Shown: positions 1 to 52,673, counted from the first letter of the stretch. The stretch: DNA of 64,000 nucleotides from IMGVR_UViG_3300046170_000378:124001-188000, one strand, 5' to 3'. Program-made: numbers and translations. Notes: a model not told the origin generated them from the letters alone.

Positions 1-489
1 AACGGCCTAAGAGCTTATAGATTCCAATATGCTGCAGTTATTGCAGATGTATGTGACTGGTACCCAGAATTTATGAATAGAGAATCAATGTTCTATTATG
101 GTACTAATGCAGTAGAATGCATCGGTTATCTTGCAGATCCTGTAGAAAAGAAAGGTAAAAAGAGTGAAGAATTCTTAGATGCTGTTATGACAAAAATATA
201 CGAAGATACTGGGTCTTTACCGTATAACGCAGAAGATGTTGCTTGTGATTTTATTAGATGGATTGAAAATTATTTAAGGCCAGGCGCAGACTATGCGCAT
301 ATTAATATGGACACTCTTTGGAATTCTTCTGAAATTAAAGACCATCCATATGGCAGACAAAAAGCAATGCTAGATTTGGGGCTTGTAAAAACATTTAATG
401 GAATGACTTCATTTCCATCAGACGATAAAATATTACAAAGCGCTGGAGTATCAGTTGAAGAGTACAAAAAAATGGTAGCAAAAATATGA
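1..489 (+). CDS. aGPT-Pplase/amino-acid:DNA transferase-like (HhH-glycosylase fold) DNA base-modification protein, 5' truncated by window edge
   Basis: Frame open from base 1: NGLRAYRFQYAAVIADVCDWYPEFMNRESMFYYGTNAVECIGYL...YNAEDVACDFIRW resembles the G.G.F....D......GpGa..Gl and diE..lCE..KY motifs of the aGPT-Pplase family; paralogous to the next gene. Confidence 0.5.
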   Translation, partial: NGLRAYRFQYAAVIADVCDWYPEFMNRESMFYYGTNAVECIGYLADPVEKKGKKSEEFLDAVMTKIYEDTGSLPYNAEDVACDFIRWIENYLRPGADYAHINMDTLWNSSEIKDHPYGRQKAMLDLGLVKTFNGMTSFPSDDKILQSAGVSVEEYKKMVAKI

Positions 490-1592
490 GTAACACTATA
501 AAAGAAATAAAAAAAGTAGCTAAACAAACACCTGATCTGGGTGTTTTGTTTACGTTTGAAGACGATGTTACACAAGAGTATAGAAATATTACATATGATG
601 GTACTTCTACAAATGTTGCATTTAAAAAGAAAAAGCCAGCAGAAAGTTGGATGAAAGATTGGTCAGAAGAAATGAGGCTAGCAAAGTTCTTTGAATTTTG
701 TCACGAGTTTGATAAGAGAGAAGATAAACTTTTGTTAGAAGATTATCAGATATTTTCTCATAGACTACATTGGCACGAGCATCCTTATTGTTATATGATG
801 CAAAAAGAAACAGACTTAGAGAAGCTACTTTATTATACCATTGTTTTCTCTTTTTCAAATGAACATTGGGGTACAATAACTCGCTTAATTAATGAAGGTG
901 AAGAAAAGACTAGGGCACATTTTGTAGAAAACAGACATGCAAGAAATGATTTATTTCAGATCTATTATCCTAAAGGTACAATAGTTAAAGATTGGTTAAT
1001 TGAAGGACCTAAAAAAGCAGCTAAAGACATGGCTCATATTCTAGAAGATTTAGAAAGACCATATACAATGATGGAATTTGCTAAATTATTAGAAGCTTAT
1101 TTTAAAGAACATCAAGGATTTAGGTCACCATTATATCCATGTAAAAACACAGCAAGATATGTTGCAATGAGTAGACCAGATCTGGTTGACCCAGAATCTA
1201 TTTTATTTGGAGGAACTGGACACTTTGATGGCATGCAACAAATATTTGGAGGAGTTAATTTAAATGGAAAAGTAAAATACACGATTGACAAAGATGGTCA
1301 ATTTATTGCAGAAAACAAACACGCTGAAGAATGGCTAAGACAAATGGATGTACTCGTAAATCATCCAAATAATCCAATGGAAAGTCAAAAGTATTTAAAT
1401 GTAGAAGATAAAACATGTTTCTTCTATAAACACATTGCGATTAGTCATGGCATTAAGTCACCTACAAAGAGAATTCCATATACTTGGATATTCGATGGTA
1501 ACTTTAATTTAGCTAAACATCCAGATAAAGAAATTAATGTTAACGCAGACACTACTCGACATTTATGGGGTAGAGATTATCCAAACGAATAA
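486..1592 (+). CDS. aGPT-Pplase/amino-acid:DNA transferase-like DNA base-modification protein
   Basis: GFRSPLYPCKNTARYVAMSRPDLVDPESILFGGTGHFDGMQQIF and LNVEDKTCFFYKH parallel the motifs of the upstream paralog; adjacent PLP enzyme. Confidence 0.5.
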   Translation: MSNTIKEIKKVAKQTPDLGVLFTFEDDVTQEYRNITYDGTSTNVAFKKKKPAESWMKDWSEEMRLAKFFEFCHEFDKREDKLLLEDYQIFSHRLHWHEHPYCYMMQKETDLEKLLYYTIVFSFSNEHWGTITRLINEGEEKTRAHFVENRHARNDLFQIYYPKGTIVKDWLIEGPKKAAKDMAHILEDLERPYTMMEFAKLLEAYFKEHQGFRSPLYPCKNTARYVAMSRPDLVDPESILFGGTGHFDGMQQIFGGVNLNGKVKYTIDKDGQFIAENKHAEEWLRQMDVLVNHPNNPMESQKYLNVEDKTCFFYKHIAISHGIKSPTKRIPYTWIFDGNFNLAKHPDKEINVNADTTRHLWGRDYPNE

Positions 1593-1595
1593 AAT

Positions 1596-2492
1596 ATGGC
1601 ACACGATAAACACACGACAAGCACAATGAATCAAGATTTAAATCTAATGATGCCAAATAGACAGGCGTGGTTAGATTTGGCCGGTGATTGGCAAGATCCA
1701 CTGGATGATCCAGTTATTGTGAATCATGAAGGATTTAATGTAGTTAGAGATGATTTAATGGGATTTGGATCTAAATGTAGATTTGGTGATATTCTAGTTC
1801 AAAAGGCACCAACGGATACTTTAGTATACGTACAGCCCAGGTTTGGTTTTGCAGGAATATCTCTCGCATATTTAGCCAAAAAATATAATAAGAAACTGGT
1901 ATTATTCATGCCATCGGGCAAAGTAATATCAGATCATCAAGCAATATGTATTGAGAGAGGAGCAATACCTAAATTTAGAAGAATTGCAGCAATGCCTAAT
2001 TTAAATAGAATTGCAAAACAATGGGCAGAAGATAATAATGCAACATTTATTCCACTAGGACTTAAACATGAACTAGTAACTGCAGCCGCAGTAAAGGTTG
2101 CATATGATGTAGCAGAAAAACATGGTTATCCAGAAGAAGTGTGGTCAGCAATATCTACTGGCGTTTTATCTAGATCTTTACAAATTGCATGGCCAGATGC
2201 TGAATTTAATGCAGTCGCGGTTTCTAGAAATATACAGACAGGTGAATTAGGTAGAGCTAAAGTTTGGTCACATCCAAAGGCGTTTGCATCAGATGTTAAT
2301 CCAGAATTTGCACCTCCGTTTCCATCTGCAATGAACTACGATGCAAAGGCTTGGGAATTTATGGTTAAGCATGGAAATCAAGGAGCTTGGTTTTGGAACG
2401 TAGGTGGACAACCTTACCCAGAATCAGAGGAAACTAAAGAAAAAACAAATTCAAAAAGAGAATGGGGAGAAGTTTTAGAAATGGACAAATAA
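1596..2492 (+). CDS. PLP-dependent enzyme, fold type II (cysteine synthase/desulfhydrase-like)
   Basis: VVRDDL..FGSKCR (PLP lysine), GFAGISLAYLAKKYNKKLVLFMP, SAISTGVLSR phosphate loop. Confidence 0.75.
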   Translation: MAHDKHTTSTMNQDLNLMMPNRQAWLDLAGDWQDPLDDPVIVNHEGFNVVRDDLMGFGSKCRFGDILVQKAPTDTLVYVQPRFGFAGISLAYLAKKYNKKLVLFMPSGKVISDHQAICIERGAIPKFRRIAAMPNLNRIAKQWAEDNNATFIPLGLKHELVTAAAVKVAYDVAEKHGYPEEVWSAISTGVLSRSLQIAWPDAEFNAVAVSRNIQTGELGRAKVWSHPKAFASDVNPEFAPPFPSAMNYDAKAWEFMVKHGNQGAWFWNVGGQPYPESEETKEKTNSKREWGEVLEMDK

Positions 2493-2496
2493 TACT

Positions 2497-2524
2497 GAAA
2501 CTATCTCACTAAAGATCATAGAAT
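2497..2524 (+). promoter_or_regulatory. Putative middle promoter variant GAAAC-N17-TAGAAT
   Basis: Same spacing as the GAAAC-N17/18-TATAA family; upstream of dNTPase/polymerase. Confidence 0.45.
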
Positions 2525-2542
2525 TAATATACACAAAAAAAT

Positions 2543-3007
2543 ATGGCAAACATAGACAACAAATGCGCAGATCTTGATATTCAAGATTATCACAAAGATA
2601 CTAAAGATACTTTTGGTTTACTCTTTGACAAGCAAAAAGAATTGCAATCTAGATTGGGCTTTGACTTTGAAGGTTGGAGCATTAAAGAGATTGCAGATTT
2701 CTGGATGGTAAACAAACATGCAATGAGCGATGAGCTTAATGAAATGTTTGATGCACTAGGTGGAATTAATGACGGTATTGGAAACGCAGGTTGGAAATAC
2801 TGGAAGAAGGACAATGTTAAGACTCCTGAAATGAAAATCGAAGATCTTAGCGAAGAAGATAAGCTAGAATTATTTTATGAGTGGATTGATGGTCTTCATT
2901 TTTATATGAACTTTGCAATTTCTATTGGTATGACAAGTAAAGATATAGTTAACTTGTACATGGCAAAGAATGCTGAGAATCACGATAGACAAGAGCGAGG
3001 ATATTAA
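2543..3007 (+). CDS. Dimeric (all-alpha, MazG-like) dUTPase/dNTP pyrophosphatase, T4 gp56-like
   Basis: SDELNEMFDALG...WKYWK...ELFYEWIDGLHF...YMAKNAENHDRQ. Confidence 0.75.
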   Translation: MANIDNKCADLDIQDYHKDTKDTFGLLFDKQKELQSRLGFDFEGWSIKEIADFWMVNKHAMSDELNEMFDALGGINDGIGNAGWKYWKKDNVKTPEMKIEDLSEEDKLELFYEWIDGLHFYMNFAISIGMTSKDIVNLYMAKNAENHDRQERGY

Positions 3008-3025
3008 TCAAACAACACACATAAT

Positions 3026-4442
3026 ATGTTACTAGACATAGAGCAAAAAGAAAACGAAGTTATTATTAGTTACTACGATAAGGAAGGTAAAGTTTCCTTT
3101 AAAAGATATTCTGTAAATAAATTTGAAAATTGGGTAGTTACTGAAGAAAAGGATCGTTGGAAAGATGTTAAGTTTAGGAACTGGGATAATAGACCTATTA
3201 AAAGATCTATCTCTAGAAGTTTTAATAAATTTAGCCTGCTCTATTTCATGGATTCATTGCCTGAAAAAGATCAAGAAGAAATCTTTGAATTTAATATGCC
3301 ACGTACATACTTTGTGGATATTGAAACTGAAATTGTAGATGGATTCCCAAAAGCAGAAGAAGCAAAAACTAGAATTCTATCGTTTTCTATTATTACACCC
3401 TGAGCGCAAAGCAATTGTTTTAGGTTTAGAAGACATGAGTTCTGATCAGATCAAGAAAATTGAAGAAGATACCAATAAACACTTCAAAGATTATGATCAA
3501 GACTGGGAATTTAGTTATTACAAGTTTGACGACGAGTATAACATGGTTTATAGTTTCTTACATAAGTTTTTACCTAAGTTCCCAATGATGACTGGTTGGA
3601 ACTTCATTAACTATGACTGGCAGTATATAGTAAACAGATGTAAGAGATTACAAATCGACCTGACTGATGTGGCTATCACTGGATCACTAGATCGAAATGA
3701 TAGTAGACCATTGCACATGGGTATTCTAGATTACATGCAATTATATGATAAATATGATAGATCAGTTGCAGTAAAAGAATCTAATTCTTTAGATTTTGTA
3801 TCGAGCTCAGTATTAGATGTTGCAAAAATCAAATACACTGGTGGATTACAAGAACTTTATGAAGATAATTTTCAAAAGTACATTTACTATAACGTAGTCG
3901 ATTCTTGTCTGGTATATTACATAGATCAACAACTTAGATCCATGGAAGTACTATTGACATTGGCAACTATCACAAGAATGCCGCTTTATAAAGCAGCATC
4001 TCCAGTGGCAGTAACTGAAGCACTTATAGCTAGAAAGCTAATAGGTCAGAATAAAAAAATTGGAATGGAATGGAATAAAGAAGATGCTAAAAAAGATGGC
4101 AAATTCGAAGGAGCATTTGTTAAACAGCCTATTGTAGGCTATTACTCTGGAGTTTCTGCGTTTGACTTTGCATCTCTGTATCCATCAATCATGCGTCAAT
4201 TTAATATATCTCCGGATGCATTTATTGAACAAGTGAATGAAATGGAAATTCCAGAAAGAAGAAAAGACAAAGATGTCATTGTCTGCGAAAACGGTGTTGT
4301 ATATAAGAAAGAAGATAGTATTCTTAAAAAGATACTAGCAGATTTATATGGTCAAAGAAAGGACTATAAAAGAACTTCTTACGAGTATTATGAAAAAGCC
4401 CATGAACTAGAAAAAAAATTAAAGAAAAAAATTAAGGTCTAA
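3026..4442 (+). CDS. Family B DNA polymerase, N-terminal subunit (gp43A-like: 3'-5' exonuclease + motif A); one apparent +1 indel at ~3400
   Basis: ExoI VDIET, ExoII GWNFINYD, ExoIII YNVVDS, motif A FDFASLYPS; removing one C from acaccctgag joins the ORFs as IITPERKAIV. Confidence 0.9.
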
Positions 4443-4468
4443 TTTTTAGAAAAAAGAAATAGTAGCAT

Positions 4469-4476
4469 GATATATA
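4469..4476 (+). promoter_or_regulatory. Putative late promoter GATATATA
   Basis: Motif shared with structural-gene leaders; upstream of nrdB. Confidence 0.4.
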
Positions 4477-4593
4477 AAATCCTAGCAGCGCTGCTATTAT
4501 TCTTACATCTAAATAGATTAGACTGGGTCTTACATAAGGCCCATTGTAGTCTTAACTGGATTCTGTAAAAAAACTTAAAAAAATAATAGCAAT

Positions 4594-5604
4594 ATGTCAA
4601 ATCTCTTTAAAGAACGCTTAGAATACAAACCGTTCGAATATCCTGAATACTATAACGAAGGTTGGCTTAAACAGGCCCAAGCCTTTTGGTTACACACTGA
4701 AATCTCAATGCAAGGTGATGTAAAAGATTGGAATGAAAATCTTATGCCACATGAAAAAAACCTTGTAGGTAATATTCTTTTGGGTTTTGCTCAAACCGAA
4801 TGTGCAGTTTCAGACTATTGGACTAATATGGTAACGAGTTGGTTTCCTAAACATGAGATTAGACAAATGGCTATGATGTTTGGATCACAAGAAACAATAC
4901 ATGCAGTTGCATATTCATATCTTAATGAAACATTGGGCTTAGAGGATTTTGCAGCATTTTTACACGAACCTGCAATTGCCGAAAAGTTTGACCTATTAAC
5001 TTCAACTTCTGCAGATTACACACATGAAGATCTAGCAGTTAATGAAGATGCTAGAAAAGAAGTCGCTAGATCATTAGCTATTTTCTCAGCATTTGCTGAA
5101 GGTGTTTCACTCTACAGTTCTTTTGCGGTTTTATATAGTTTCCAAATGAGAAACTTACTTAAAGGAATTGGCCAACAAATGAAGTGGTCAGTAAGAGATG
5201 AGTCTTTGCACTCAAAGATGGGATGCCAGTTATTCAGACACATGTGTACAGAGTATCCAGAATTAAAGGATCAAGTAGAATCAGAAGTTTTAGAAGCTGC
5301 TAGATTAATGGTTGAAATGGAACACAAGTTTATTGATAAAATGTTTGAGCAAGGTGATCTTGCAAATATGGAAGCAGAAAATCTAAAACATTTTATTGTT
5401 AAAAGAGCTAATGAAAAGATTGCAGAGCTTGGATACACCGATGGTCCTTTTATGGAATTAGATGATGAAAAAGCAAGTAACTTAGATTGGTTTTATCACC
5501 TAACAGGTGGACATACGCACACCGACTTTTTTGCTATCAGACCTACTGACTACGCAAAAGCAGGAGAAGACGAGAATTGGGACGAGGATGACTTGTTCGA
5601 CTAA
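4594..5604 (+). CDS. nrdB: Ribonucleotide reductase class Ia beta subunit
   Basis: QETIHAVAY, FAEGVSL, VRDESLH di-iron motifs; C-terminal acidic tail. Confidence 0.95.
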   Translation: MSNLFKERLEYKPFEYPEYYNEGWLKQAQAFWLHTEISMQGDVKDWNENLMPHEKNLVGNILLGFAQTECAVSDYWTNMVTSWFPKHEIRQMAMMFGSQETIHAVAYSYLNETLGLEDFAAFLHEPAIAEKFDLLTSTSADYTHEDLAVNEDARKEVARSLAIFSAFAEGVSLYSSFAVLYSFQMRNLLKGIGQQMKWSVRDESLHSKMGCQLFRHMCTEYPELKDQVESEVLEAARLMVEMEHKFIDKMFEQGDLANMEAENLKHFIVKRANEKIAELGYTDGPFMELDDEKASNLDWFYHLTGGHTHTDFFAIRPTDYAKAGEDENWDEDDLFD

Positions 5605-5618
5605 TACAGATAATAAAA

Positions 5619-7456
5619 ATGAGTAAAGAAAATAAAGTAAACTATGGAGCTTCATTAGGTTGGGAGCTAGGTGTTGATTTCCCAACATGGGGAAACACAG
5701 AGATATACGTTAAGACAATAAGCAAAGGATATTGTTACCAAGATGAAACGCCAAAAGGATGCATATTGGAGAGTTGCAACTACAATTGCTAAAAGATTAG
5801 GTAAACCTGAACTTGCATCGAAATTTTTTGATTATATATGGAAAGGTTGGTTGAATCTAGCCTCACCGGTTCTTTCAAACACTGGGCTAGAAAGAGGACT
5901 TCCTATTTCATGTTTTGGTATTGATGTCGCTGATTCTATTCATGACATTGGAGCTAAAAACTTAGAAATGATGTTACTCGCTAAGCATGGTGGAGGTGTT
6001 GGACTAGGTATTAATCAAATTAGACCAGCGGGTGCAAAAATCACAGGTAATGGAACAAGCGACGGAGTCGTACCGTTCTGTAAAATATATGACTCTACAA
6101 TCCTTGCTACTAACCAAGGGTCTGTCAGACGTGGAGCTGCGTCAGTTAATATTGATATTGAACATGATGATTTCTGGGAATGGCTAGAAATTAGAGAACC
6201 TAAAGGTGATGTAAATAGACAATCTTTAAATCTACATCAATGTGCTGTTGTTCCAGATGGTTTTATGCAAAAAGTAGAAGCAGGTGATAAGGAATCTCGT
6301 AAAAGATGGGCTGCACTTTTAAGAAAGCGTAGATCTACAGGAGAACCATATATCATGTATAAAGGAAATGTAAATAGAGCTAATCCAGAAGCATATCACA
6401 AAAATGGATTAAAAGTTTATATGACCAATATTTGTTCTGAAATTACATTACACACAGATGAATCGCATTCATTTCGTATGTTGTTTATCATCTGTAAACC
6501 TTGGCAAAATACAACGAATGGAAAGATACTGATCTTATTTACACCGCGACTTGGTTTTTAGATGGTGTTATGGAAGAATTTATCCAAAAGGCTAAATTTA
6601 TGAGAGGTTTTGAAAACTCAATTAGATCAGCTGAAAAAGGAAGAGCATTAGGACTTGGTGTATTAGGATGGCATACATATCTACAAGAAAAAAATATTCC
6701 ATTTGATTCTCTATCTGCTCAATTTGAAACACGTAAAATATTTTCACAATTAAAGATAGAATCTGAAAGAGCATCTAGAGATTTAGCTACAGAATATGGT
6801 GAACCACTTTGGTGCGTAGGGACTGGAATGAGAAACACACACCTAAGAGCTATTGCTCCTACAGTAACTAATTCAAAACTTAGTGGAAATGTTTCACCTG
6901 GTATTGAGCCATGGGCAGCAAATCTATTAACAGAACAAACAGCTAAAGGGCACTTTCATCAGAAAAAACCCAACATTAGAAAAGGTTTTAGAAACTATCG
7001 GTAAAAATACTAAAACAACATGGGACAAGATATTAGAAGATGGTGGTTCGGTTTTAGGTTTACCATGGATTGAAGATTATTTTGTTTCCTTCGTTTTCAG
7101 ATAACGATGGAACTGCAGGTATTCAAAAACCATTGACTCAAAAACAATTGGAAAAATTACCAACGTTAGAGCAGGCCGATTATATTCCCATGAAAGATGT
7201 ATTTAGAACATTTAAGGAAATTAATCAATTAGATCTAGTAAGACAAGCGGGTATTAGACAACAATATGTTGATCAAGCTGCAAGTTTAAATCTAGCTTTC
7301 CCAAAAGAAGCTGAACCCAAATTCATAAATCAAGTACACTTAGAAGCATACAGAAAGGGCGTAAAAACACTTTACTATATGAGAACTGAAAGTGTACTTA
7401 GAGGAGATATTGCTGCATCTGCTACAGATCCCGACTGTGCAGCGTGTGACGGATAA
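5619..7456 (+). CDS. nrdA: Ribonucleotide reductase class Ia alpha subunit (several apparent sequencing indels)
   Basis: LASPVLSN, ISCF, TNICSEI, IAPTVTNS, KTLYYMRT, C-terminal CAACDG; N-terminus WELGVDFPTWGNTEIY as in Flavobacteriia NrdA. Confidence 0.92.
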
Positions 7457-7512
7457 AAATAAAAAGGTGAGGTTTGAAGACCTCGTCTTAGGACCGGGAT
7501 AGTTCTCGGAAA

Positions 7513-7550
7513 GAGGCCAGACGTATCGCTACTGTCTGGCCTCGCTTTTT
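7513..7550 (+). terminator. Rho-independent terminator after nrdA
   Basis: GAGGCCAGAC...GTCTGGCCTC stem followed by T run. Confidence 0.75.
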
Positions 7551-7602
7551 ATAAAGAATTATCATATTAACAATCAAATGTTAATTATTTTAGATAAAAA
7601 AT

Positions 7603-7629
7603 GAAACCTTTTTTGTTTACATGGTATAA
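7603..7629 (+). promoter_or_regulatory. Putative middle promoter GAAAC-N17-TATAA
   Basis: tGAAACcttttttgtttacatggTATAAt upstream of OMP gene. Confidence 0.6.
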
Positions 7630-7772
7630 TAGACCAATTAACAAAGAAAAATGAACACAACTTCATTATACTTATTAACAAAGACTGCTAAAAATAACAG
7701 CAGCACATCTATCTTTACTCCTAGAACTGTTATCACAGACTGATAGATTTATTTTAACCAAAACATTTTAAT

Positions 7773-8189
7773 ATGAAAAATTTTATTTTAACATTAGCCC
7801 TTGTGGCATTGACAACATTCGGTGCAAATGCACAGAATGCAAAAGGTGACTGGTACGTAGGTACTGGCGATATTACTAACACGGCTTGGACTGAATTATC
7901 AATCCAACCAACAATCGGTTATGCATTTGCAGATAACTACATGGTGGGAATGAGCCTTTCACAGGCAGATTCAACTGAAGACATGTCTTTAGGCCTAGAA
8001 GGAAGATATTTCCACAAAGGGTTTTTTGGATATGTAGGACTTAATGATTTTGATTTCGATCAACTTCAATTAGGCGTAGGTAAAATGTTCGCATTCCATA
8101 AAGGATCTATGTTTGTAGATCCAAAAATCGTTTACGATTTAGGAACTGAGACAACTAACCTTCAAATCGGCTTTGGTTTAAAGTTCTAA
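7773..8189 (+). CDS. Small outer-membrane beta-barrel protein with signal peptide
   Basis: MKNFILTLALVALTTFGANA signal; alternating hydrophobic beta-strands; C-terminal LQIGFGLKF beta-signal. Confidence 0.75.
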   Translation: MKNFILTLALVALTTFGANAQNAKGDWYVGTGDITNTAWTELSIQPTIGYAFADNYMVGMSLSQADSTEDMSLGLEGRYFHKGFFGYVGLNDFDFDQLQLGVGKMFAFHKGSMFVDPKIVYDLGTETTNLQIGFGLKF

Positions 8190-8306: not shown

Positions 8307-9051
8307 ATGAAACTTAAATTAGATCGTATTGACCAGCATGCTTTGACAGCATTCATCAACAGAGTAAAACCGATTGATTCTTTCATTTACATGAAAATTG
8401 CAGATGGAACAATTAATTCAACAGTTTATCTTCCACAAAGAGATGCAGTAAAACATCACTCAGTAGAAGTAAGTACTATTTTTCAAGTAGAAGAATGGCC
8501 AGAAAACTGACAAAGAAATGAAAATTGCATTCTTTGAAGGTAACAAAGTAATCGAAGCTATTAAGCACTTTGATGCAGATGCAATTAAAGGTGAAATTGA
8601 ATTCATCGAAAACGACAATGAATTAGTAGCATCTTCGCTACGTATTTTCAATGATGAGCTAGAAATTACTTTAGCTTGTTCAGAGCCTTCACTTGGCTTT
8701 AAAGATCTTACACAAGATCAGATTGATGCAATCTTTGCAAGAGAAGATAGTAAATTTGACTTTAGCTTTGACACTCACATGATAGGTAAAGTTAAAAATC
8801 TATTTTCACTAGATAAAGATGAAACATTTAGCATTAAATCTGATGTATCAGGTGTAAGCGTAAGTGGTAAATCATTTAGCGTTGTAATCAATCCAGATAC
8901 AAGCGGAAATGGTGAAGTAACAGTTTATAAAAAGTACTTAAGCTTACTTGACAAAGACGAACAAACAGTATATGTTTCAGGATCAAAGGTTGTTTTTAAC
9001 TCCAATGACACAAATACATTACTAACTGTTTCAACTTGTCAAACAGCATAA
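8307..9051 (+). CDS. Probable DNA polymerase sliding clamp (gp45-like); one apparent indel at ~8505
   Basis: ~247 aa when joined (EWPETDKEMKIAF), alpha/beta pattern, directly upstream of the polymerase gene; weak sequence recognition. Confidence 0.55.
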
Positions 9052-9053
9052 GT

Positions 9054-10262
9054 ATGAACATCGAAGCGCTAGAAAATAAATCTATCGAGGAATTGACTGA
9101 TAATGAGGCGAAGCTGCTTGTAGATCACTACAAGCAGCTTTCAGCCAAATATACAGCATATGAACAAGCAGTTAAGTTAACACTAAACTCGATCTACGGA
9201 GCCTTCGGTAATAAGTGGTTCCACTTTTTTAATATTGACATTGCCGAGTCAATTACAAAACAAGGCAAAAATGCAATTCTCTACTCAGAAACAATTCTTA
9301 ATAAATATGTTAATGAGTTTTGGCACAAAGACACAGCAGTCCACGCACATTTCGGTATCAAAGTAAAGGGTAAAATTGAAAAACCTGCAGTAATTTATAT
9401 TGATACAGATTCATGTTACGTACAGTTTCAGGATTTGTATGAATCAATAATTTGGCCAGAAGAAACCGAGAAGATGGAAATTGATGTGTTTATTTTAGCA
9501 CTTTATGGATTTAGGCTTAAAGATTATATAGCTAAATGTATGGAGAAGTATGCAGAAAAAAGAAACACAGATAATTATTTAATATTCGAACTAGAGGCGC
9601 TCGCGTACAATGGTATTTGGATGTCCAAGAAAAAGTATATTCAAAACATAGCATGGGACGATAAGTTAGAAATTACAGATCGTCACAAATCATTGAAGAA
9701 AATTAAGACAATTGGATTTGATACGATTCAATCTTCAACGCCCAAATTTGTTAGAGAAAAACTAGTAGAAGCACTTAAAATTATCTTTAAAAGTAGAGTA
9801 ACTCCAACTGCAGAAGATCTACAAGCATTGGTTGTTTTTATGAAAGAAACCAAGAAACAATTCAAACTGGCAGATATTGATGAGATTTCATTTAATAGAA
9901 GAACCAACAATATCGATAAGTATATTGTAGATGATCAGACAGAATTTCAGATAGGACTAAAATGTCCAGCCAATGTTAAAGCCGCAGGATATTATAACTA
10001 TCTACTAAATAACAATAAAAAGTATAAAAACAAATATAAGGTTATTGGTAACGGTGAAAAGCTAAAGATTTATAACTGTAAATCACCAATATCAGAGGTT
10101 TATGCATATATGCCAAATGAACACCCTTATGAAATTGCTCCAGAAATTGATTACGACACTCAATTTGAAAAAGCAATGATTGATCCTCTTAATAGAGTAT
10201 TGACAGCAATTGGTCTACAAACACTAGACACTAATCTAATTTACGCATCGTCGTTATTTTAA
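9054..10262 (+). CDS. Family B DNA polymerase, C-terminal subunit (gp43B-like: motifs B and C, thumb)
   Basis: KLTLNSIYGAFGN (motif B), YIDTDS (motif C), KKKY. Confidence 0.92.
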   Translation: MNIEALENKSIEELTDNEAKLLVDHYKQLSAKYTAYEQAVKLTLNSIYGAFGNKWFHFFNIDIAESITKQGKNAILYSETILNKYVNEFWHKDTAVHAHFGIKVKGKIEKPAVIYIDTDSCYVQFQDLYESIIWPEETEKMEIDVFILALYGFRLKDYIAKCMEKYAEKRNTDNYLIFELEALAYNGIWMSKKKYIQNIAWDDKLEITDRHKSLKKIKTIGFDTIQSSTPKFVREKLVEALKIIFKSRVTPTAEDLQALVVFMKETKKQFKLADIDEISFNRRTNNIDKYIVDDQTEFQIGLKCPANVKAAGYYNYLLNNNKKYKNKYKVIGNGEKLKIYNCKSPISEVYAYMPNEHPYEIAPEIDYDTQFEKAMIDPLNRVLTAIGLQTLDTNLIYASSLF

Positions 10263-10706: not shown

Positions 10707-11816
10707 ATGGCAAAGAAAGATTTTAGTTTTGACGATATAAACGCTGAGTTAAAACAATTGAATCCTATGGGATCAATTATGGCAGACTCAACTTTTAGTG
10801 AAGTTACAGAGTGGATTGACACTGGTAACTATCACTTGAATGCATGTGTTAGTGGTTCACTTTTCGGTGGATGGCCAAACAGTAGAACATGTTCAATCGC
10901 AGGACCCTCAGGAACTGGTAAAACATTCTTAGTATTGAACTCAGTAAAAAGAGCAATCGATATGGGATATAATGTGATCTATTATGATAGTGAAGCTGCG
11001 GTAGATAAAGATCAAATGGAAAAGTTTGGTATTGATGTTACTAAAGTAAATTATCAACCAATTAACACTGTTCAAGAATTTAGAACATCGGTTACTACAT
11101 TAACTAGTAAGATGCAAGAGATCAAAAGAGTTGGTGGTAAAACACCAAAGGTTATGATGATTCTAGATTCTGCAGGTAACTTAGCAACACAAAAAGAAAT
11201 TGAAGATGCAAAATCAGGATCTGAAAAAGCAGATATGACAAGATCTAAGGTGCTAAAATCTATTTTTAGAATCATTATGACACCTTTAGCAGATCTTAAG
11301 ATACCGTTTATTTTTACTAACCATACTTATCAGACTCAAGATTTTATCTCAAGACAAGTAGCTGGTGGTGGAACTGGACCAGAATATGCAGCATCTATTG
11401 TTCTATTCTTAGGAAAGGCGCAACTTAAAGAATCTAGTGGTGAAAAAGCAGGTATTATTGTAACTGCTAAGCCAAATAAGAATCGTTTTGCAAAACCACA
11501 TAATATTAAATTTCACCTACACTTTACAGAAGGTATGAACAGATATGTTGGGTTAGAACAATATATTGATTGGGAAGAAATTGGTATTACAAAGGGTGTT
11601 ATCGAAAAGGGTGAGAAGATCCCTAAGAAAACTGCAAGAAATTGGATCTGTAAGCACTTAGACGAAACTGTACCTAATAAAGATTTCTTCTCAGAGAAAG
11701 TATTTACACAAGAAGTATTAGAAAAGATTGAAGCTAGAATCAAACATGTCTTTAATTACAATACTGAAGAAAGAGAAATAGACTTAGACGAAATATTAGA
11801 AGAGGATGCAAATTAA
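10707..11816 (+). CDS. uvsX: RecA-like recombinase (UvsX)
   Basis: IDTGNYHLN, GPSGTGKT, YYDSEAA, ILDSAGNL, GGGTG. Confidence 0.92.
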   Translation: MAKKDFSFDDINAELKQLNPMGSIMADSTFSEVTEWIDTGNYHLNACVSGSLFGGWPNSRTCSIAGPSGTGKTFLVLNSVKRAIDMGYNVIYYDSEAAVDKDQMEKFGIDVTKVNYQPINTVQEFRTSVTTLTSKMQEIKRVGGKTPKVMMILDSAGNLATQKEIEDAKSGSEKADMTRSKVLKSIFRIIMTPLADLKIPFIFTNHTYQTQDFISRQVAGGGTGPEYAASIVLFLGKAQLKESSGEKAGIIVTAKPNKNRFAKPHNIKFHLHFTEGMNRYVGLEQYIDWEEIGITKGVIEKGEKIPKKTARNWICKHLDETVPNKDFFSEKVFTQEVLEKIEARIKHVFNYNTEEREIDLDEILEEDAN

Positions 11817-12105
11817 TCAGGATAATCTACCCATAAAATATGTTATGGGCATAGAAAAAGATTTACCTGAATATCCAACCGGCTTTGACATACTCTACAA
11901 AGAGATACAATTGTGTGTTAGAATGCCAGATAGACATAAAGGCAATTTTACTTTACATGCCCTAAAAACATATAGGTTTACAGAAACCGACGAATCTAAA
12001 TTATTAGAATCTATCGAAGATTTAGTTAATCTAGGTATTGTAGAACCAGTAAACACCGAGAAGGGCAAGCTTTCTTGGAAAATAATTCAAAACCCATTCG
12101 CATGA
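11806..12105 (+). CDS. Hypothetical protein (possible winged helix)
   Basis: ORF track; translationally coupled. Confidence 0.6.
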   Translation: MQINQDNLPIKYVMGIEKDLPEYPTGFDILYKEIQLCVRMPDRHKGNFTLHALKTYRFTETDESKLLESIEDLVNLGIVEPVNTEKGKLSWKIIQNPFA

Positions 12106-12683
12106 TAACAGTAATTGACGATTTTATAAAAGATAAAAATCTCTTAGAAGAGATACAATCAAACGCACAGGATATATTTAAAGATCCAGGCGTTTACAAG
12201 TGGTATGATGGTTGGTGGAATTCACCGGTAAATAATACTACTAAAAAAATTATAGAATATGCATGGGGGCAGAATTGTCCAATTTCAACATCATATGATA
12301 TTTCTGGATTTGAATATTGGACTGGCATTCAACAGTCAAATCAAAACGGTCAAGATTTTGATGACTATTTAGAAATGCATTTCGATAAAGACGAAGCTTG
12401 GTTTGAAAAAACAGGAGAATTTAAAACCCCAATAATGGGATCTATTTATTATCCACACCAAGACGAGTTTGAAGGTGGAATGTTAGAAATATATTCTAAT
12501 GGAGATGAAAATCCACCAGAAGTACTTTATGCTAAACCAAATAGGCTGATTATATTCGAAGCTGGTAAACATCCACACCAGGTCACAGTAGTTACAAAAG
12601 GAACTAGATACGCAGTGGCCATAAATTTATGGGACGAGGAGCCTTATAGTAAACAAATTGGTAAATTTACCATAGAAGGATAA
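12102..12683 (+). CDS. 2OG-Fe(II) oxygenase (prolyl-hydroxylase-like)
   Basis: HFD...EGGML...HPHQV...GTRY: HxD..H..R jelly-roll motif; ATG at 12102 overlaps the upstream stop. Confidence 0.85.
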   Translation: MITVIDDFIKDKNLLEEIQSNAQDIFKDPGVYKWYDGWWNSPVNNTTKKIIEYAWGQNCPISTSYDISGFEYWTGIQQSNQNGQDFDDYLEMHFDKDEAWFEKTGEFKTPIMGSIYYPHQDEFEGGMLEIYSNGDENPPEVLYAKPNRLIIFEAGKHPHQVTVVTKGTRYAVAINLWDEEPYSKQIGKFTIEG

Positions 12684-12693
12684 ACAACATTAT

Positions 12694-14010
12694 ATGCAAT
12701 TCGGTCAAGATTTTGAAAAAATATTTTTTAGGTTATCATTAATCAAGCCTAAATATCTACAGAGTATTAAGAAAAGTTTTTATACTTCTGAAGAAATAGA
12801 TCTGTTAAGTTATTTAGCTAATAAGTTTTATGATAAATTTCATGAAACACCAAGTAAAGAGCAGTTATGGTTATTGGTTAATAGACATGAAAGGGCAAAG
12901 GAAAAGATTAATGAAGATTTATTAGACCTAGTATTTAAAACAGATCTTGATCAATATGACGAAGAATGGTTAACTACTACAGCTGAATCTTGGATTAAAT
13001 GGCGCACCTTTGACACCACACTAATAGATACTATAGAATTTATTAAGACTACTAAGGTAACACCTGAGAACGCAGACACTGTTATCCAAAAGGTTAAAGG
13101 TCTTATTAATGAAAGAAACAATCTTAGTTTTAATTCTGATCTTGGTTTAGACTTCTTTGATGTAGAATCACACGATCAAAAAGAATCAGAAAAAGTAAGT
13201 TCAGGATATAATTTTATTGACAGGCTTTTAGGAGGTGGATATGACAAGGGAGGTAACTTAATTGTATATGCTGGAGAACAGAATATTGGTAAGTCAATAT
13301 ATCTAGCAAATGATGCAGCAAACTTTGTAAAAATGGGAACTAACACTGTGGTTATTACCGCAGAAATGGCAGCTCATAAATTTGTAAAGAGAATTGGATC
13401 AAATCTTCTTAGCGTAAACATTAATGAATACGCAGAAAAGGCAAAGAATAAAGATCACATTAAGAGAAGGCTAGAAACGGTCGGCGATGGTTTTACACCA
13501 CCCGGTCAACTGTTTATTAAGCAAATGCCAACGTCACAGGCAACAGTATTAGATATTGAAGCGTATGTTAGTCAAATTGAAGAAGAGCGTCAGATTAAGA
13601 TCGGTGCAGTTGTGGTAGATTACATAAATATCTTAGCAAACTACAGAAATTTAAACACGGAAAATACTTATATGAAGATCAAGCAAATTGCAGAAGATCT
13701 TAGAGCTATGGGTATTAGAAATGATTGGTTGATAGTCACAGCGACTCAGATAAATAGAAATGGCTACAATTCTTCAGACATTTCAATGACAGACGTTGCA
13801 GAATCTGCAGGTCTTTCTCACACAGCAGACATCATGTTAGGTATTATACAAGATGATCTTATGCGAGCTAATGACGAATATTGGCTTAAGATTTTAAAAA
13901 TTAGGGACGGCGAGGGCAAAGGAACTAAGTGTAAATTGAATATTAATTGGAATTACATGAGGCTAATTGAAACCGACGACATTACAAATTCAAACTTACA
14001 CGGAATATAA
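12694..14010 (+). CDS. Replicative DnaB-like helicase (gp41)
   Basis: GEQNIGKS Walker A, ITAEM, VVDYINI, TATQINR, AESAGL. Confidence 0.92.
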   Translation: MQFGQDFEKIFFRLSLIKPKYLQSIKKSFYTSEEIDLLSYLANKFYDKFHETPSKEQLWLLVNRHERAKEKINEDLLDLVFKTDLDQYDEEWLTTTAESWIKWRTFDTTLIDTIEFIKTTKVTPENADTVIQKVKGLINERNNLSFNSDLGLDFFDVESHDQKESEKVSSGYNFIDRLLGGGYDKGGNLIVYAGEQNIGKSIYLANDAANFVKMGTNTVVITAEMAAHKFVKRIGSNLLSVNINEYAEKAKNKDHIKRRLETVGDGFTPPGQLFIKQMPTSQATVLDIEAYVSQIEEERQIKIGAVVVDYINILANYRNLNTENTYMKIKQIAEDLRAMGIRNDWLIVTATQINRNGYNSSDISMTDVAESAGLSHTADIMLGIIQDDLMRANDEYWLKILKIRDGEGKGTKCKLNINWNYMRLIETDDITNSNLHGI

Positions 14011-36080: not shown

Positions 36081-37913
36081 TGAGCGATTACGTAGGAGAC
36101 AATAAATGGATACCAAAAGAAGACACTGCACAAGCAGCTTCTGATAGGATTGTTTGGTCTACTAAACAAGTAGACGATCTTATGCTTGCACTTGATCAAG
36201 GGTACAGGCCAAAGGTTGCAATGCCATTTTATGAAGGTAAACAGTTTCTACGTAAAGGTAATATTGTATTTGAATACACAGATGAAGAAATTACTGAATT
36301 AGCTAGATGTGCTCAAGACATCGTTTACTTTGCAGAAAAATATGCAGTAGTAATGACAGATGATGGTATTCAACAAGTAAAACTTAGAGAATATCAAAAA
36401 AGAATGTTGAGAAACTTTCAAAATGAAAGATTTAACATTGTTCTTGCATCTCGACAAATGGGTAAAACAGTAACTGCATCAATATTTAATGCGTGGTATG
36501 TTACTTTTAACACAGACAAAAATACACTTTTATTAGCTAATAAATCTGACTCGACAAAGGAAATTATAGATAAAGCAAAAGGTTGTAGTTGAAAATTTAC
36601 CATTCTTCATGAAGCCTGGTATTATCAAATATGACGTGATGAACGTGAGATGTGATAATGGTTGTCGATTAATAGGACAATCAACTACAGCAAAATCAGG
36701 TATTGGTTTTACAATTCACAACCTATACTTAGATGAGTTTGCCCACATTCACCCATCGATAGCCGATACTTTTTATGAAAATGTATATCCAACGCTATCG
36801 TCTTCTAAAGTTTCTAGAATTACTATTACTTCTACACCAAACGGATTTAATAAATTTTATAATATTTATGCCGCTGCAGAACGAGGTGATAACGAATACC
36901 ATGCAATGCGTATTGATTGGTGGGAACACCCAGACAGAGATGACGCATGGTATGAAAGAGAGCTGGCAAATTTAGGTACTATTGAGGCATTTAATAAACA
37001 ATATGGAAATGAATTTGTTTCGTCTTCAAACCTACTTCTAGATCCAGTCGATATGAAGAAAATGCGTAAGCGTATGAAAAAATATATTCATAACGAGTTT
37101 GATCAATTTGATTACATTAGTATTGATGTAAAAGACTATTTAACATGGGACCCTGAATTTGATATTGAAACATGTAAAGATGGTGGCAATTTTTGGTTAT
37201 TTTCGGTAGATATAGCAGAAGGAAATGGAGGTGATTATTCAGTGATTAATATTTTTAAAATAGATCACATGAATGAACAAGAAATAAAAAACGTTGTAAA
37301 TCCTGGAGCGATGTATGATTTCTTTAAATTTAAACAAGTTGCAGTCTTTAGGTCTAACGAACATGTTATTGAAGATTTTGCTAAAATACTATATACACTA
37401 AGCGTTGATATTTTCAATCCAGAGAATGTTAAGATGGTAGTAGAATACAACACATATGGTACTGTACTTTTCCAATACTTAGGAACTGTGTTTCCGCAAA
37501 GAAACGATTTTGATGAAGAGATGATTGTTAGATTTAAGCACAGACATGATAGTAAAACACTAAAACCAGGAATAAAATTAAAAACAGATAATAAAGCAAT
37601 ATTTTGTCAGAATTTTGCAAAATTATACAAGATAAATAGATTAGATTTGACAGATGAATCAACGATAGTAGAAGCTAGTTTGTTTGGTACATTAAGAAAT
37701 GGAAGTTACGGAGCTCAAATGGGAAATGACGATACCATTATGACAGCGATTACCGGAACAGAATTTTTTAATACCACAGACTATGCAGATTATATTGAGG
37801 AACTCTTAGATGTCATTGACCCTGATGTCCACGATGCAATGGAAAGAATCTTATTTAAAGATAACTCTGAGCAAGGGGATTTACAGTTTGACATTTATGA
37901 TCTGCTTAAATAA
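36080..37913 (+). CDS. Terminase large subunit (gp17); one apparent indel at ~36580
   Basis: SRQMGKT, LYLDEFA, ITSTPNG, SVDIAEGNGGDYS, NDDTIM. Confidence 0.92.
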
Positions 37914-51818: not shown

Positions 51819-52673
51819 ATGCCAGAATTAGCCGAACTTAAATTAACATCAGATTACGTAAATAATTGCTCAGAAGGAGTAACATATGCTCGCGTAGAAA
51901 AGAATCCCCAACACAAAGGTAAGGAGCTAGATATTCCATTTAAATATTTCAGGCTTAAATCAGAAAGTAAAGGTAAAGAAATTGTACTAACTATTAAAGA
52001 TGAAGATAGCAAAGATTTTATTCCTATTCGTATTACTATGGGAATGTCAGGTCATTTTCAACTAACAAATACTGGCCAAGAGCCAAAGCACGCACACCTT
52101 AAGTTCCATCGAAAAGACGGCACTACACTATCGTTTGTAGATGTACGTAGATTTGGTAAATGGACACAAGGTGTTGCATGGAACGAGGACAGAGGACCAG
52201 ATCCAACGTCAGATTTCGATGCCTTCTTTTTGAATATTATGACTAATCTTACTAAAAGAACATTTCGTAAGCCACTTTATGAAGTTCTTATGGACCAAAA
52301 ATGGTTTAATGGGATTGGTAATTATCTAAGAGCTGAAATTATATTTAGAGCAGAGAATGTTGATCCATTTCTCCCAGCATCTCAGCAAATTGCTAAGTAC
52401 CCAAAGATCTTGGAACTATGTAGAGATATTCCGATGTTGGCGTATGCCAAAGGAGGCGGAAGTATTCGAGACTGGGACAATCCATTTGGATCTGATGCCA
52501 TCCAAGAAAAATTTATGCTCTGTTATGGAAACAAAACGATGGATACTCGTATAGATCCTAAGGGACGTAGATTTTGGTATGATCCTAAATGGAACGCACC
52601 GATGCACAGAGACGATTTAAAAGATTGGGATTATTATAGCGGCTTACCAAGTCCTTCAGCATATAAATCATAA
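51819..52673 (+). CDS. Fpg/Nei-family DNA glycosylase/AP lyase
   Basis: N-terminal PELAE, GKE, GMSG, DVRRFG, H2TH LMDQKWFNGIGNYLRAEI; no Cys4 zinc finger. Confidence 0.9.
   Translation: MPELAELKLTSDYVNNCSEGVTYARVEKNPQHKGKELDIPFKYFRLKSESKGKEIVLTIKDEDSKDFIPIRITMGMSGHFQLTNTGQEPKHAHLKFHRKDGTTLSFVDVRRFGKWTQGVAWNEDRGPDPTSDFDAFFLNIMTNLTKRTFRKPLYEVLMDQKWFNGIGNYLRAEIIFRAENVDPFLPASQQIAKYPKILELCRDIPMLAYAKGGGSIRDWDNPFGSDAIQEKFMLCYGNKTMDTRIDPKGRRFWYDPKWNAPMHRDDLKDWDYYSGLPSPSAYKS

Follow-up and report, generated by a model that had tools for sequence, protein, structure and literature searches.

A conserved gene cassette of a marine T4-like phage that most likely decorates a hydroxymethylated pyrimidine in its DNA, apparently without a DNA kinase

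Results

Three operon-like genes upstream of a gene 56 homolog and gene 43

Phages such as ViI and M6 graft amino acids onto a thymine-derived base of their DNA, and the locus studied here raises the question of whether a marine T4-like phage does something similar, on which base, and with which enzymes. We analyzed a window of 64,000 nucleotides (IMGVR_UViG_3300046170_000378:124001-188000) from a 212-kb contig of an uncultured phage whose host is probably a member of the Bacteroidota. A sequence-only reading had proposed that the first 2,492 nucleotides encode two divergent aGPT-Pplase-like paralogs and a fold-type II PLP enzyme, upstream of a dNTPase and the DNA polymerase, and that these genes hypermodify thymine. 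The observation itself was confirmed, with all three ORFs on the + strand, whereas the interpretation was only partly supported, as detailed below. The features of the locus are as follows.

1..489 (+): ORF1, the C-terminal 162 aa of a 402-aa protein assigned to the aGPT-Pplase/HMUDK_hel superfamily
232..258 (+): putative active-site motif of ORF1, E-D-V-A-C-D-F-I-R (E-x3-C-x3-R)
486..1592 (+): ORF2, a 368-aa protein, predicted all-alpha, of the aGPT-Pplase superfamily, closest to the HMUDK_hel (PF18723, "clade 1") branch
1212..1232 (+): G-T-G-x3-G loop of ORF2
1404..1430 (+): putative active-site motif of ORF2, E307-D-K-T-C311-F-F-Y-K315
1596..2492 (+): ORF3, a fold-type II PLP-dependent enzyme (PHROG 7093 family)
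1773..1775 (+): Lys60 of ORF3 (GSK), the predicted Schiff-base lysine
2543..3007 (+): homolog of the T4 gene 56 dCTPase/dUTPase
3026..4442 (+): N-terminal part of a split gene 43 (B-family DNA polymerase)

ORF1 runs off the left end of the window, and its first residue there is residue 241 of the full-length protein, which is seen in a near-identical contig (L011:11572-12780). ORF1 and ORF2 overlap by ATGA (486-489), and ORF3 starts 3 nt after the ORF2 stop, so the three genes are operon-like. Contigs from three independent seawater DNA runs (Logan assemblies) showed no insertions or deletions in 1-2492, and contigs over ORF2 were found in a metatranscriptome. By contrast, the independent assemblies lack one base in the homopolymers at 3398-3400 and 5753-5756, which led us to reject stop-codon recoding or programmed frameshifting as the cause of the broken polB and nrdA genes; the frame break at 3398-3400 is thus an assembly error. 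A eukaryotic giant virus, suggested by eIF-1a, DUF5824, and DUF5856 near the homolog in another contig (L003), was ruled out by the presence of gp20, gp23, gp21, UvsX, gp41, and gp46/47. Megablast of positions 1-8000 against phage genomes and tblastn of ORF2 and full-length ORF1 against 50,697 phage records found nothing.

ORF1 and ORF2 are remote paralogs of the aGPT-Pplase/HMUDK_hel/amino-acid:DNA-transferase superfamily

The two motifs on which the sequence-only reading based its family call are real: ORF1 contains PEFMNRESMFYYGT and NAEDVACDF, and ORF2 contains PDLVDPESILFGGTG and NVEDKTCFF. Pairwise BLASTP of the two proteins was not significant on its own (E=0.22) but aligned exactly these motifs, while comparison of the family profiles with hhalign gave E=5e-4 over 147 columns. 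The structure models hit each other's orthologs in BFVD at E=5.8e-5 and 3.5e-3 with probability 1.0, indicating that remote paralogy is better than chance.

The superfamily call, made from motifs alone, is right at the level of fold and superfamily. The ORF2 model (AF2, pLDDT 86) hit aGPT-Pplase1 at 3e-4, the HMUDK_hel protein of PhiW-14 (C9DG43) at 8e-3, and the SP10 kinase and a mycobacteriophage ADDT at 0.1 in Foldseek searches of BFVD. The ORF1-family model (pLDDT 67) hit ADDT-named proteins, aGPT-Pplase1 at 0.22, and an ORF2-type protein. ESM Atlas neighbours carry PF18723, PF18724, and PF18746 at scores of 0.96-0.97 (PF18723/PF18724 for ORF1), and a structural neighbour has TM 0.75-0.87. 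With hhalign, ORF2 matched PaMx11 gp50, itself PF18723 at 5.6e-41, at E=7e-4 over 156 columns with both motifs aligned, although the ORF1 profile did not. UniProt already names orthologs of both ORFs (for ORF1, A0A6J5L8T5) "Amino acid:DNA transferase domain-containing protein", so the family assignment itself is not new. However, ORF2 and ORF1, as a fragment or at full length, hit no Pfam model of the superfamily at E<=1 or <=0.05, and only 3 of 22 ORF2-family members gave weak PF18723 hits, with a best E of 0.0038. Comparisons of the ORF1 and ORF2 profiles with the clade-2 transferases PaMx11 gp46 and ViI gp247 gave E of 0.13-0.28 over short, spurious alignments, and phmmer of ORF2 and the ORF1 family against PDB sequences found nothing. 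The solved gp46 structure (8Z2M) is not among the 50 listed PDB Foldseek matches to ORF2, none of which is significant.

Conservation within the families points to the putative active sites. In 22 ORF2 sequences down to 23% identity, E307, C311, and K315 are invariant, as are G243 and G249, whereas T244 and G245 are at least 90% conserved; the G-T-G-x3-G loop aligns with the PGPGAARG loop of gp50. ORF1 is 67% identical to P0121, and its family has 945 members, all unnamed; in the family alignment, the E, C (C322), and R of the motif are invariant. The remark in the sequence-only reading that there is no clear match to CE..KY therefore understates the similarity, since the E-x3-C-x3-K spacing of gp50 (EHTLCEFDK) is reproduced in ORF2 (EDKTCFFYK) and, with Arg, in ORF1 (EDVACDFIR). 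PaMx11 gp46 has E243-x3-C247, and Cys and Glu are essential in M6 gp51 and ViI gp247 (PMC8989533); for ORF1 and ORF2, a catalytic role of these residues is inferred from sequence alone.

ORF3 is a probable fold-type II PLP enzyme of a family with a link to DNA

ORF3 hit PHROG 7093 at 4e-39 and, below the curated cutoff, Pfam PALP (PF00291) at 1.5e-4 (21.6 bits against a cutoff of 35), and its family profile hit cysteine synthases at 4e-3. Lys60 is invariant in the family alignment and aligns with the PLP lysine of cysteine synthases and with K92 of ViI gp226 (named in PMC8989533), the characterized decarboxylase, which is also a weak-PALP fold-type II enzyme. The relationship to gp226 is nonetheless only remote (hhalign E=0.004, probability 8%), and BLASTP showed only a C-terminal YDAK...FWNVG patch at E=0.009. 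The same domain is fused to an N6/N4 DNA methylase in Erythrobacter phage R6L gp1, where it scores 40.6 bits against PALP, and it is placed next to ParB genes in Mae-JY30.

The cassette has a fourth, SGNH-like member, and no 5-hmdU DNA kinase was found near it

Examination of related contigs revealed that an SGNH-like gene just upstream of the window (L011:10358-11419) also belongs to the cassette. Among 80 related loci, ORF1 is present in 80, SGNH in 71, and ORF3 in 59, and the missing cases are mostly contig ends. The four genes stay adjacent in permuted orders: here SGNH-ORF1-ORF2-ORF3, followed by the gene 56 homolog and gene 43, and elsewhere ORF1-ORF2-SGNH-ORF3 or ORF1-ORF3-ORF2-SGNH. 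ORF2, ORF3, and SGNH are adjacent even in a phage whose ORF2 is only 23% identical. This persistence, the fusion of the ORF3 domain to a DNA methylase, the fusion of the SGNH protein described below, and the conserved Cys/Glu motif of the transferases (HhH glycosylases use Asp/Lys) make it very unlikely that ORF1 and ORF2 are merely glycosylase-like repair or anti-defence proteins and ORF3 an auxiliary metabolic enzyme (ACC deaminase, D-cysteine desulfhydrase, or cysteine synthase type) sharing their operon. In favor of that reading, the best PDB match of ORF2 by TM-score, though weak, is an 8-oxoguanine glycosylase (7ou3, probability 0.14), the ORF3 profile hits cysteine synthases, and no modification has been observed.

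The SGNH assignment rests on invariant GDSH, G-N-I-D, and C-terminal His motifs (blocks I, III, and V) and on ESM Atlas leads only (Lipase_GDSL neighbours at 0.91, TM of 0.4-0.68), with no Pfam or PDB profile hit. A P-loop at the N terminus of this protein was considered and rejected because the GK motif is not conserved in homologs. Homologs at 30-37% identity occur in Aeromonas phages. In phages 31 and 44RR2.8t, the protein (ORF233c of phage 31, 795 aa) is SGNH plus a C-terminal domain that we assign to the HMUDK_hel family because its homologs at 40-60% identity carry PF18723. That assignment relies on this annotation alone, since hhalign of the domain, singly or as a 14-sequence profile, against the ORF1 and ORF2 profiles or gp50 gave no signal other than a shared C-terminal tail.

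A P-loop 5-hmdU DNA kinase and a dUMP hydroxymethylase, whose presence elsewhere in the genome had been set beforehand as a test of the thymine reading, were not found near any of the 80 copies or in the roughly 114 kb of this genome that could be read, about 100 kb remaining unseen. Specifically, tblastn with PaMx11 gp49 or ViI gp243 had no kinase hit in the 80 loci (+/-10 kb), and the Pfam content of the 114 kb included no kinase other than a guanylate-kinase-like gene. Parts of the contig read upstream and downstream of the window contained neither a kinase nor a thymidylate-synthase (TS) homolog. The closest IMG/VR TS homolog (L098) lies on other contigs without overlap with this genome.

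Alternatively, the cassette could make or trim a sugar-containing modification, in which the SGNH-like protein and the helical proteins would act on a glycosylated 5hmC or 5-hydroxycytosine, for example by acylating, deacylating, or aminating the sugar, rather than graft an amino acid onto the base. In Aeromonas phage 25, the SGNH gene follows a UDP-galactopyranose mutase, which hints at sugar rather than acyl chemistry. In L003, the cassette is flanked by an NAD-dependent sugar epimerase/dehydratase and an NAGPA-type phosphodiester glycosidase; an epimerase lies near gp42 in the related contig L174 and in 18 of 80 TS loci; the N-terminal domain of the SGNH protein of contig L088 has a weak T4 beta-glucosyltransferase hit (E=0.0023); and the window has a GT25 gene. 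We nevertheless consider this reading unlikely. The E-x3-C motif typical of C6-attacking pyrimidine enzymes is invariant in both helical proteins, the sugar genes are not conserved next to the cassette (there is none in the window's clade), and the TS homologs of relatives keep Asp169, so they are not of the 5-hydroxy-dCMP type.

The nucleotide-metabolism context points to cytosine rather than thymine

The gene at 2543-3007, read earlier as a dNTPase, is a T4 gene 56 dCTPase homolog. It carries Pfam dUTPase_2 and PHROG 173, follows ORF3 in 34 of the 80 loci, and matched 1413 phage records by tblastn at 33-41% identity over about 88% of the protein to Tevenvirinae gp56, including T4T "56: dCTP pyrophosphatase"; its substrate preference is inferred from this homology. 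A cyanophage-type MazG was ruled out because all tblastn hits are gp56 of Straboviridae. In relatives, gp42-type TS homologs are adjacent to the cassette (contigs L017, L088, L089/L094, and L174) or 3 kb away (L079/L090), all with Asp at ThyA positions 143, 169, and 177, the signature of 5-hydroxymethyl-dCMP synthases (diagnostic residues from PMC13326640). Aeromonas phages 44RR, 31, and 25 have genes 42 and 56 but no glucosyltransferase (PMC2993671). However, gp56 homologs also occur in T4 relatives without gene 42 (PMC2993671), and in the absence of a TS homolog from the part of this genome that was read, the source of a hydroxymethyl base in this particular phage is unproven.

The base is not shown to be thymine. 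A thymine module, in which 5-hmdU would be phosphorylated by a kinase encoded elsewhere in the genome, ORF1 or ORF2 would be the amino-acid:DNA transferase, and ORF3 the decarboxylase, has in its favor that every characterized member of the superfamily acts on 5-hmdU-derived bases (PMC8989533, PMC11472151) and that a paralogous pair plus a fold-type II PLP enzyme is the architecture described for thymidine hypermodification clusters (PMC8989533). A dCMP deaminase between the TS homolog and the cassette in L017, L094, and L174 could also feed uracil nucleotides, and about 100 kb of the genome is unseen. We consider it unlikely given the lack of a detected kinase in the 80 loci and in the roughly 114 kb of this genome that could be read, the gp56 homolog, and the adjacent TS homologs, which have Asp, not Asn, at the ThyA-177 position, making them dCMP-specific.

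Discussion

With moderate confidence, we read the locus as three genes of a four-gene, post-replicative hypermodification cassette, more likely acting on 5hmC than on 5hmU. While the genes, their remote superfamily membership, their conserved motifs, and their linkage come from the analysis, every step of the mechanism that follows, including catalysis by any of the four proteins, is inferred. A hydroxymethylated pyrimidine would enter the DNA during replication; going by the neighbourhood in relatives and the gp56 context, this would be 5-hydroxymethylcytosine made by a gp42-type enzyme. ORF1 and ORF2 would be base-flipping, HhH-glycosylase-like proteins whose cysteine, as shown for M6 gp51 and ViI gp247, would attack C6 of the flipped pyrimidine, so that the C5 substituent leaves and an exocyclic methylene accepts a nucleophile such as an amino acid. 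ORF2 is nearest to the "clade 1" branch, though, and the paper showing transferase activity for clade 2 left open whether the other paralog is needed. In this view, the leaving group is not made by a P-loop kinase, and the SGNH-like protein, fused to an HMUDK_hel domain in Aeromonas phages in the same way the kinase is fused to one in SP10, is the best candidate for the activating or partner enzyme, for example by O-acylation. ORF3 would then process the DNA-tethered amino acid through its free amine, most likely by decarboxylation as ViI gp226 and M6 gp52 do. The expected result is a bulky, probably cationic base that protects the genome from host nucleases, taking the place of T4's glucosylation.

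Hypermodified bases decide which restriction, CRISPR, and glycosylase defences a phage escapes, and they are a source of DNA-modifying enzymes. All characterized aGPT-Pplase systems act on thymine precursors and need a DNA kinase, so a kinase-less version tied to the T4 cytosine-replacement pathway would widen both the chemistry and the substrate range of this superfamily. More tentatively, this would be the first non-glycosyl, amino-acid-type hypermodification of 5-hydroxymethylcytosine, installed by aGPT-Pplase-like enzymes whose leaving group is made by an SGNH-type enzyme. The same SGNH-helical machinery would then explain what the gene 42-positive, glucosyltransferase-negative Aeromonas phages 44RR2.8t, 31, and 25 do with their hmC, a question left open in 2010 (PMC2993671); these cultured phages allow the idea to be tested directly. 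The cassette is not rare, as the ORF1 and ORF2 families have hundreds of near-full-length members at about 70% identity on 150-270 kb contigs from marine and freshwater metagenomes. A widespread phage lineage may therefore carry an undescribed base, and such DNA may also be under-represented or mis-called in sequencing.

Comparison with known systems

The thymidine hypermodification clusters of phages M6, ViI, PaMx11, PhiW-14, and SP10 comprise a 5-HMUDK kinase, an aGPT-Pplase clade 1/clade 2 pair, and a PLP decarboxylase, rSAM, or FAD enzyme (Iyer et al. 2013; PMC5889632; PMC8989533; PMC11472151). The cassette shares with them a paralogous pair of all-alpha, glycosylase-like proteins with a G-x-G loop and a Glu/Cys motif near the C terminus, an adjacent fold-type II PLP enzyme with a conserved lysine, and a location among replication and nucleotide-metabolism genes. 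It differs in that no P-loop kinase was found, an SGNH-like two-domain protein is present instead, sequence similarity to the clade-2 ADDTs gp46 and gp247 is undetectable, the ORF3 family is only remotely related to gp226, and the nucleotide context (gp42- and gp56-type genes) points to cytosine rather than to a dUMP hydroxymethylase.

PaMx11 gp50, a stand-alone "clade 1" protein of the PF18723 family that also provides the helical domain of the SP10 gp186 kinase, is the best profile match to ORF2, and in both lineages the helical domain occurs fused to a catalytic partner. ORF2 has an extra N-terminal region of about 60-100 residues, and the fused partner in its lineage is SGNH-like (Aeromonas phages), not a kinase.

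With the T-even hmC system (gene 42 hydroxymethylase, gene 56 dCTPase, and alpha/beta-glucosyltransferases next to gene 43), the locus shares a T4-like genome, an adjacent gp56 homolog, proximity to gene 43 and, in relatives, an adjacent gp42-type enzyme 54% identical to T-even gp42. There is no glucosyltransferase in the cassette, gp42 has not been located in the part of this genome that was read, and the predicted chemistry is group transfer by C6 attack rather than O-glycosylation.

Finally, ORF233c of Aeromonas phages 31 and 44RR2.8t (PHROG 17781) and ORF225c of phage 25 (PHROG 13881) are homologs of the SGNH-like gene. No ORF2 or ORF3 homolog was detected in cultured phages by tblastn, but the 795-aa form combines the SGNH-like protein with an HMUDK_hel-family domain in T4 relatives that are gene 42/56 positive and glucosyltransferase negative.

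Genomic context of the cluster

The window is a strand-uniform stretch (33% G+C) of a T4-like myophage that encodes gp20 portal, gp21 protease, gp23 capsid, UvsX, gp41, gp46/47, gp15, sheath, and terminase, and it corresponds to positions ~124,001-188,000 of a 212,342-bp JGI seawater contig, 3300046170 Ga0494229_00520. The capsid protein is nearest to those of an uncultured huge phage, Tenacibaculum phages PTm1/PTm5, and Lak phages. Together with a Bacteroidota-style signal peptide at 7773 and a 599-aa protein carrying a CHU_C (type IX secretion sorting) domain about 0.7 kb past the window end (positions 11438-13237 of the downstream contig segment L185), this points to a Bacteroidota host. 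Three genes occupy the left end:

1-489, ORF1, cut by the window edge
486-1592, ORF2
1596-2492, ORF3

ORF1 and ORF2 overlap by ATGA, and ORF3 starts 3 nt after the ORF2 stop. A near-identical IMG/VR contig (L011) shows full-length ORF1 to be 402 aa.

Contigs from three independent seawater DNA runs cover the region without indels, and the reading frames are therefore sound. Further along, frame breaks occur in polB-N, nrdA, terminase, and sheath (3398-3400 and 5753-5756; also 6501-6561, 7004-7070, 36592-36609, and 39952-40001). At the first two sites, the window carries one-base homopolymer insertions (CCC and AAAA, respectively) relative to three independent assemblies. These assembly errors, which are not biology, explain the broken polB-N and nrdA frames and probably also the split terminase and sheath ORFs. 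The homopolymer errors suggest a long-read assembly. The B-family DNA polymerase (gene 43) is split into two genes about 4.6 kb apart (3026-4442 and 9036-10262), with nrdB, nrdA, a signal-peptide ORF (7773-8189), and two further ORFs between them. Gene 43 is split in Aeromonas phages 44RR and 25, the same phages that share the SGNH-like gene described below.

ORF1 and ORF2 are remote paralogs

The sequence-only reading had noted that ORF1 and ORF2 share a pair of motifs, and this observation held, as both motifs exist in both ORFs. BLASTP between the two ORFs is not significant (E=0.22) but aligns precisely those motifs, whereas the family profiles align over 147 columns with an hhalign E value of 5e-4. 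Consistently, the AlphaFold models (pLDDT 86 for ORF2 and 67 for the ORF1 family) each hit the other family's ortholog in BFVD with probability 1.0. ORF1 and ORF2 are therefore remote paralogs.

Neither protein hits Pfam, PHROGs, or any PDB sequence, and the ORF2 model has no significant PDB fold match. Several independent lines still place both in the aGPT-Pplase/HMUDK_hel/amino-acid:DNA-transferase superfamily. ESM Atlas lists PF18723, PF18724, and PF18746 clusters as the nearest named neighbours of both. Foldseek against BFVD finds, for ORF2, an aGPT-Pplase1 protein (3e-4), the PhiW-14 HMUDK_hel protein (8e-3), and the SP10 kinase and a mycobacteriophage ADDT (0.1), and UniProt already names the orthologs of both ORFs 'Amino acid:DNA transferase domain-containing protein'. 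Three of 22 ORF2-family members give weak PF18723 hits. Finally, the ORF2 profile aligns with PaMx11 gp50, itself PF18723 at 5.6e-41, at E=7e-4 over 156 columns, which puts the GTGxxxG of ORF2 on the PGPGAARG of gp50 and E307-x3-C311-x3-K315 on E-H-T-L-C-E-F-D-K. These three ORF2 residues are invariant down to 23% identity, and ORF1 has the invariant equivalent E-D-V-x-C-D-F-I-R. The solved transferase gp46 has E243-x3-C247. In M6 gp51 and ViI gp247 this Cys and Glu are essential, and the Cys is proposed to attack C6 of the pyrimidine (PMC8989533). However, neither family shows any profile similarity to the characterised clade-2 transferases, and ORF2 is closest to the 'clade 1'/HMUDK_hel branch, for which no activity has been established. 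An ORF2-like protein of 394 aa (P0251) and the HMUDK_hel proteins related to the Aeromonas fusion described below share a C-terminal tail, W.IL..L.K.G...K...Y (hhalign E=0.0024), which may be a small DNA-binding module.

ORF3 belongs to a family of putative PLP-dependent enzymes with a possible link to DNA

ORF3 hits PHROG 7093 at 4e-39 and Pfam PALP below threshold, and its family profile hits cysteine synthases. Lys60 is invariant and aligns both with the CysK lysine and with K92 of ViI gp226, the lysine named in PMC8989533. The latter protein, a proven decarboxylase of DNA-linked serine, is likewise a sub-threshold PALP protein, but specific homology between the two is only marginal. Independent signs that the ORF3 family works on DNA come from two cultured phages: in Erythrobacter phage R6L the domain is fused to an N6/N4 DNA methylase, and in Microcystis phage Mae-JY30 it follows two ParB genes.

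The cassette includes an SGNH-like gene

Inspection of 80 IMG/VR loci carrying ORF2 relatives revealed a cassette larger than the three genes initially noticed. ORF1 is present in all 80 loci, ORF3 in 59, and a gene encoding a 353-aa protein in 71. In this genome, the 353-aa gene lies immediately upstream of ORF1 (L011:10358-11419). The protein has invariant GDSH, G-N-I-D, and C-terminal His motifs and Lipase_GDSL neighbours in ESM Atlas but no Pfam or PDB hit, and we therefore refer to it only as SGNH-like. The usual order is DUF6378-SGNH-ORF1-ORF2-ORF3-gp56-gene 43, but ORF1-ORF2-SGNH-ORF3 and ORF1-ORF3-ORF2-SGNH also occur. In a 179-kb T4-like contig whose ORF2 is only 23% identical, the order is ORF2-ORF3-SGNH; in this distant relative (L017), a C5 DNA methyltransferase (L017:13388-14614) follows these three genes. 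Such adjacency, surviving permutation, is good evidence of a functional unit. The DUF6378 gene (102 aa; L011:10046-10354) precedes the SGNH-like gene in 63 of the 80 loci, and a 49-aa ORF lies between the SGNH-like gene and ORF1. A 301-aa protein 3 kb upstream of the cassette (L011:7553-8458) gives a weak hit (E=0.006) to Nmad5, a 'nucleotide modification associated domain'.

The SGNH-like protein has homologs in cultured T4 relatives (38 Aeromonas, 3 Tenacibaculum, and 2 Stenotrophomonas phage records); Tenacibaculum phage PTm1 is among the carriers. In Aeromonas phages 31, 44RR2.8t, and UP87, it is the N-terminal third of a 795-805-aa protein (PHROG 17781). The C-terminal 444 residues of that protein have homologs at 40-60% identity, most of which carry PF18723; they give weak direct PF18723 hits themselves, and they keep G-x-G-A and an invariant E-x3-C. 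The SGNH-like module is therefore fused to an HMUDK_hel domain in the same way the P-loop kinase is fused to one in SP10. By analogy, this makes it the candidate for the step that the kinase performs elsewhere, or for a tightly coupled step. A sugar-centred pathway is an alternative suggested by Aeromonas phage 25, in which the stand-alone SGNH-like gene is preceded by a UDP-galactopyranose mutase and a 358-aa protein of unknown function, both annotated as absent from 44RR2.8t (locus L186:276-3547), and by the sugar-nucleotide genes next to the cassette in another locus, L003.

The nucleotide-metabolism context points to cytosine

The gene following ORF3, read from the sequence alone as a dNTPase, is a homolog of T4 gene 56 dCTPase/dUTPase. 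Thymidylate-synthase (TS) homologs lie beside the cassette in the related loci L017, L088, L089/L094, and L174, and 3 kb away in L079/L090; that of L017 is 54% identical to T-even gp42. Those aligned (L017, L088, L094, L079, and L090) have Asp at ThyA positions 143, 169, and 177. According to PMC13326640, D177 gives dCMP specificity, an acidic residue at 143 goes with hydroxymethylation, and N169 would mark 5-hydroxy-dCMP synthases. These enzymes therefore read as 5hm-dCMP synthases. However, no TS homolog at all occurs in the about 114 kb of this genome that were read (12+10+7 kb upstream, the 64-kb window, and about 20 kb downstream), a search that left out about 100 kb. Aeromonas phages 44RR, 31, and 25 are the T4 relatives noted in 2010 as having genes 42 and 56 but no glucosyltransferase, with the fate of their hmC unknown (PMC2993671).

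The sequence-only reading had inferred a hypermodified thymine, with reference to phages ViI and M6, in which 5-hmdU is phosphorylated by a DNA kinase, and this interpretation was supported only in part: the superfamily placement is borne out, but no P-loop HMUDK and no dUMP hydroxymethylase were found in any of the 80 loci. The 5hmU-plus-kinase route remains a rival to the cytosine-based model. Other genes in the window could bear on handling of a modified base:

51819-52673, Fpg/Nei-type DNA glycosylase
54931-55689, family-25 glycosyltransferase
55710-56183, guanylate-kinase-like protein (a possible dNMP kinase)

These three lie close together. A 2OG-Fe(II) oxygenase (PF13640; 12075-12683), conceivably a pyrimidine dioxygenase, lies between uvsX and gene 41.

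Proposed mechanism and comparison with known systems

What our analysis establishes is homology, motif conservation, gene linkage, and fusions, whereas every chemical step that follows is inference. In the proposed model, a hydroxymethyl-pyrimidine in DNA, more likely 5hmC, would be flipped into ORF1 and/or ORF2; Cys attack at C6, with Glu as general acid, would expel an activated C5 substituent, and a nucleophile, probably an amino acid, would add to the exocyclic methylene. The SGNH-like protein would provide activation or a coupled transfer, and ORF3 would then act on the free amine of the adduct, most simply by decarboxylation. Besides the 5hmU-plus-kinase and sugar-centred routes, a role unrelated to DNA modification is a further rival.

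The cassette is abundant in environmental T4-like phages (477 and 945 database relatives; 422 IMG/VR loci), and contigs of a marine metatranscriptome cover parts of it, including ORF2, although this does not prove transcription. It is inferred to work like the M6, ViI, and PaMx11 clusters, and ORF1 and ORF2 belong to the same protein superfamily. It departs from them in that ORF1 and ORF2 lack the profile similarity expected of clade-2 ADDT, in that no co-occurring kinase was found in the loci examined, and in the addition of a new component, the SGNH-like protein.
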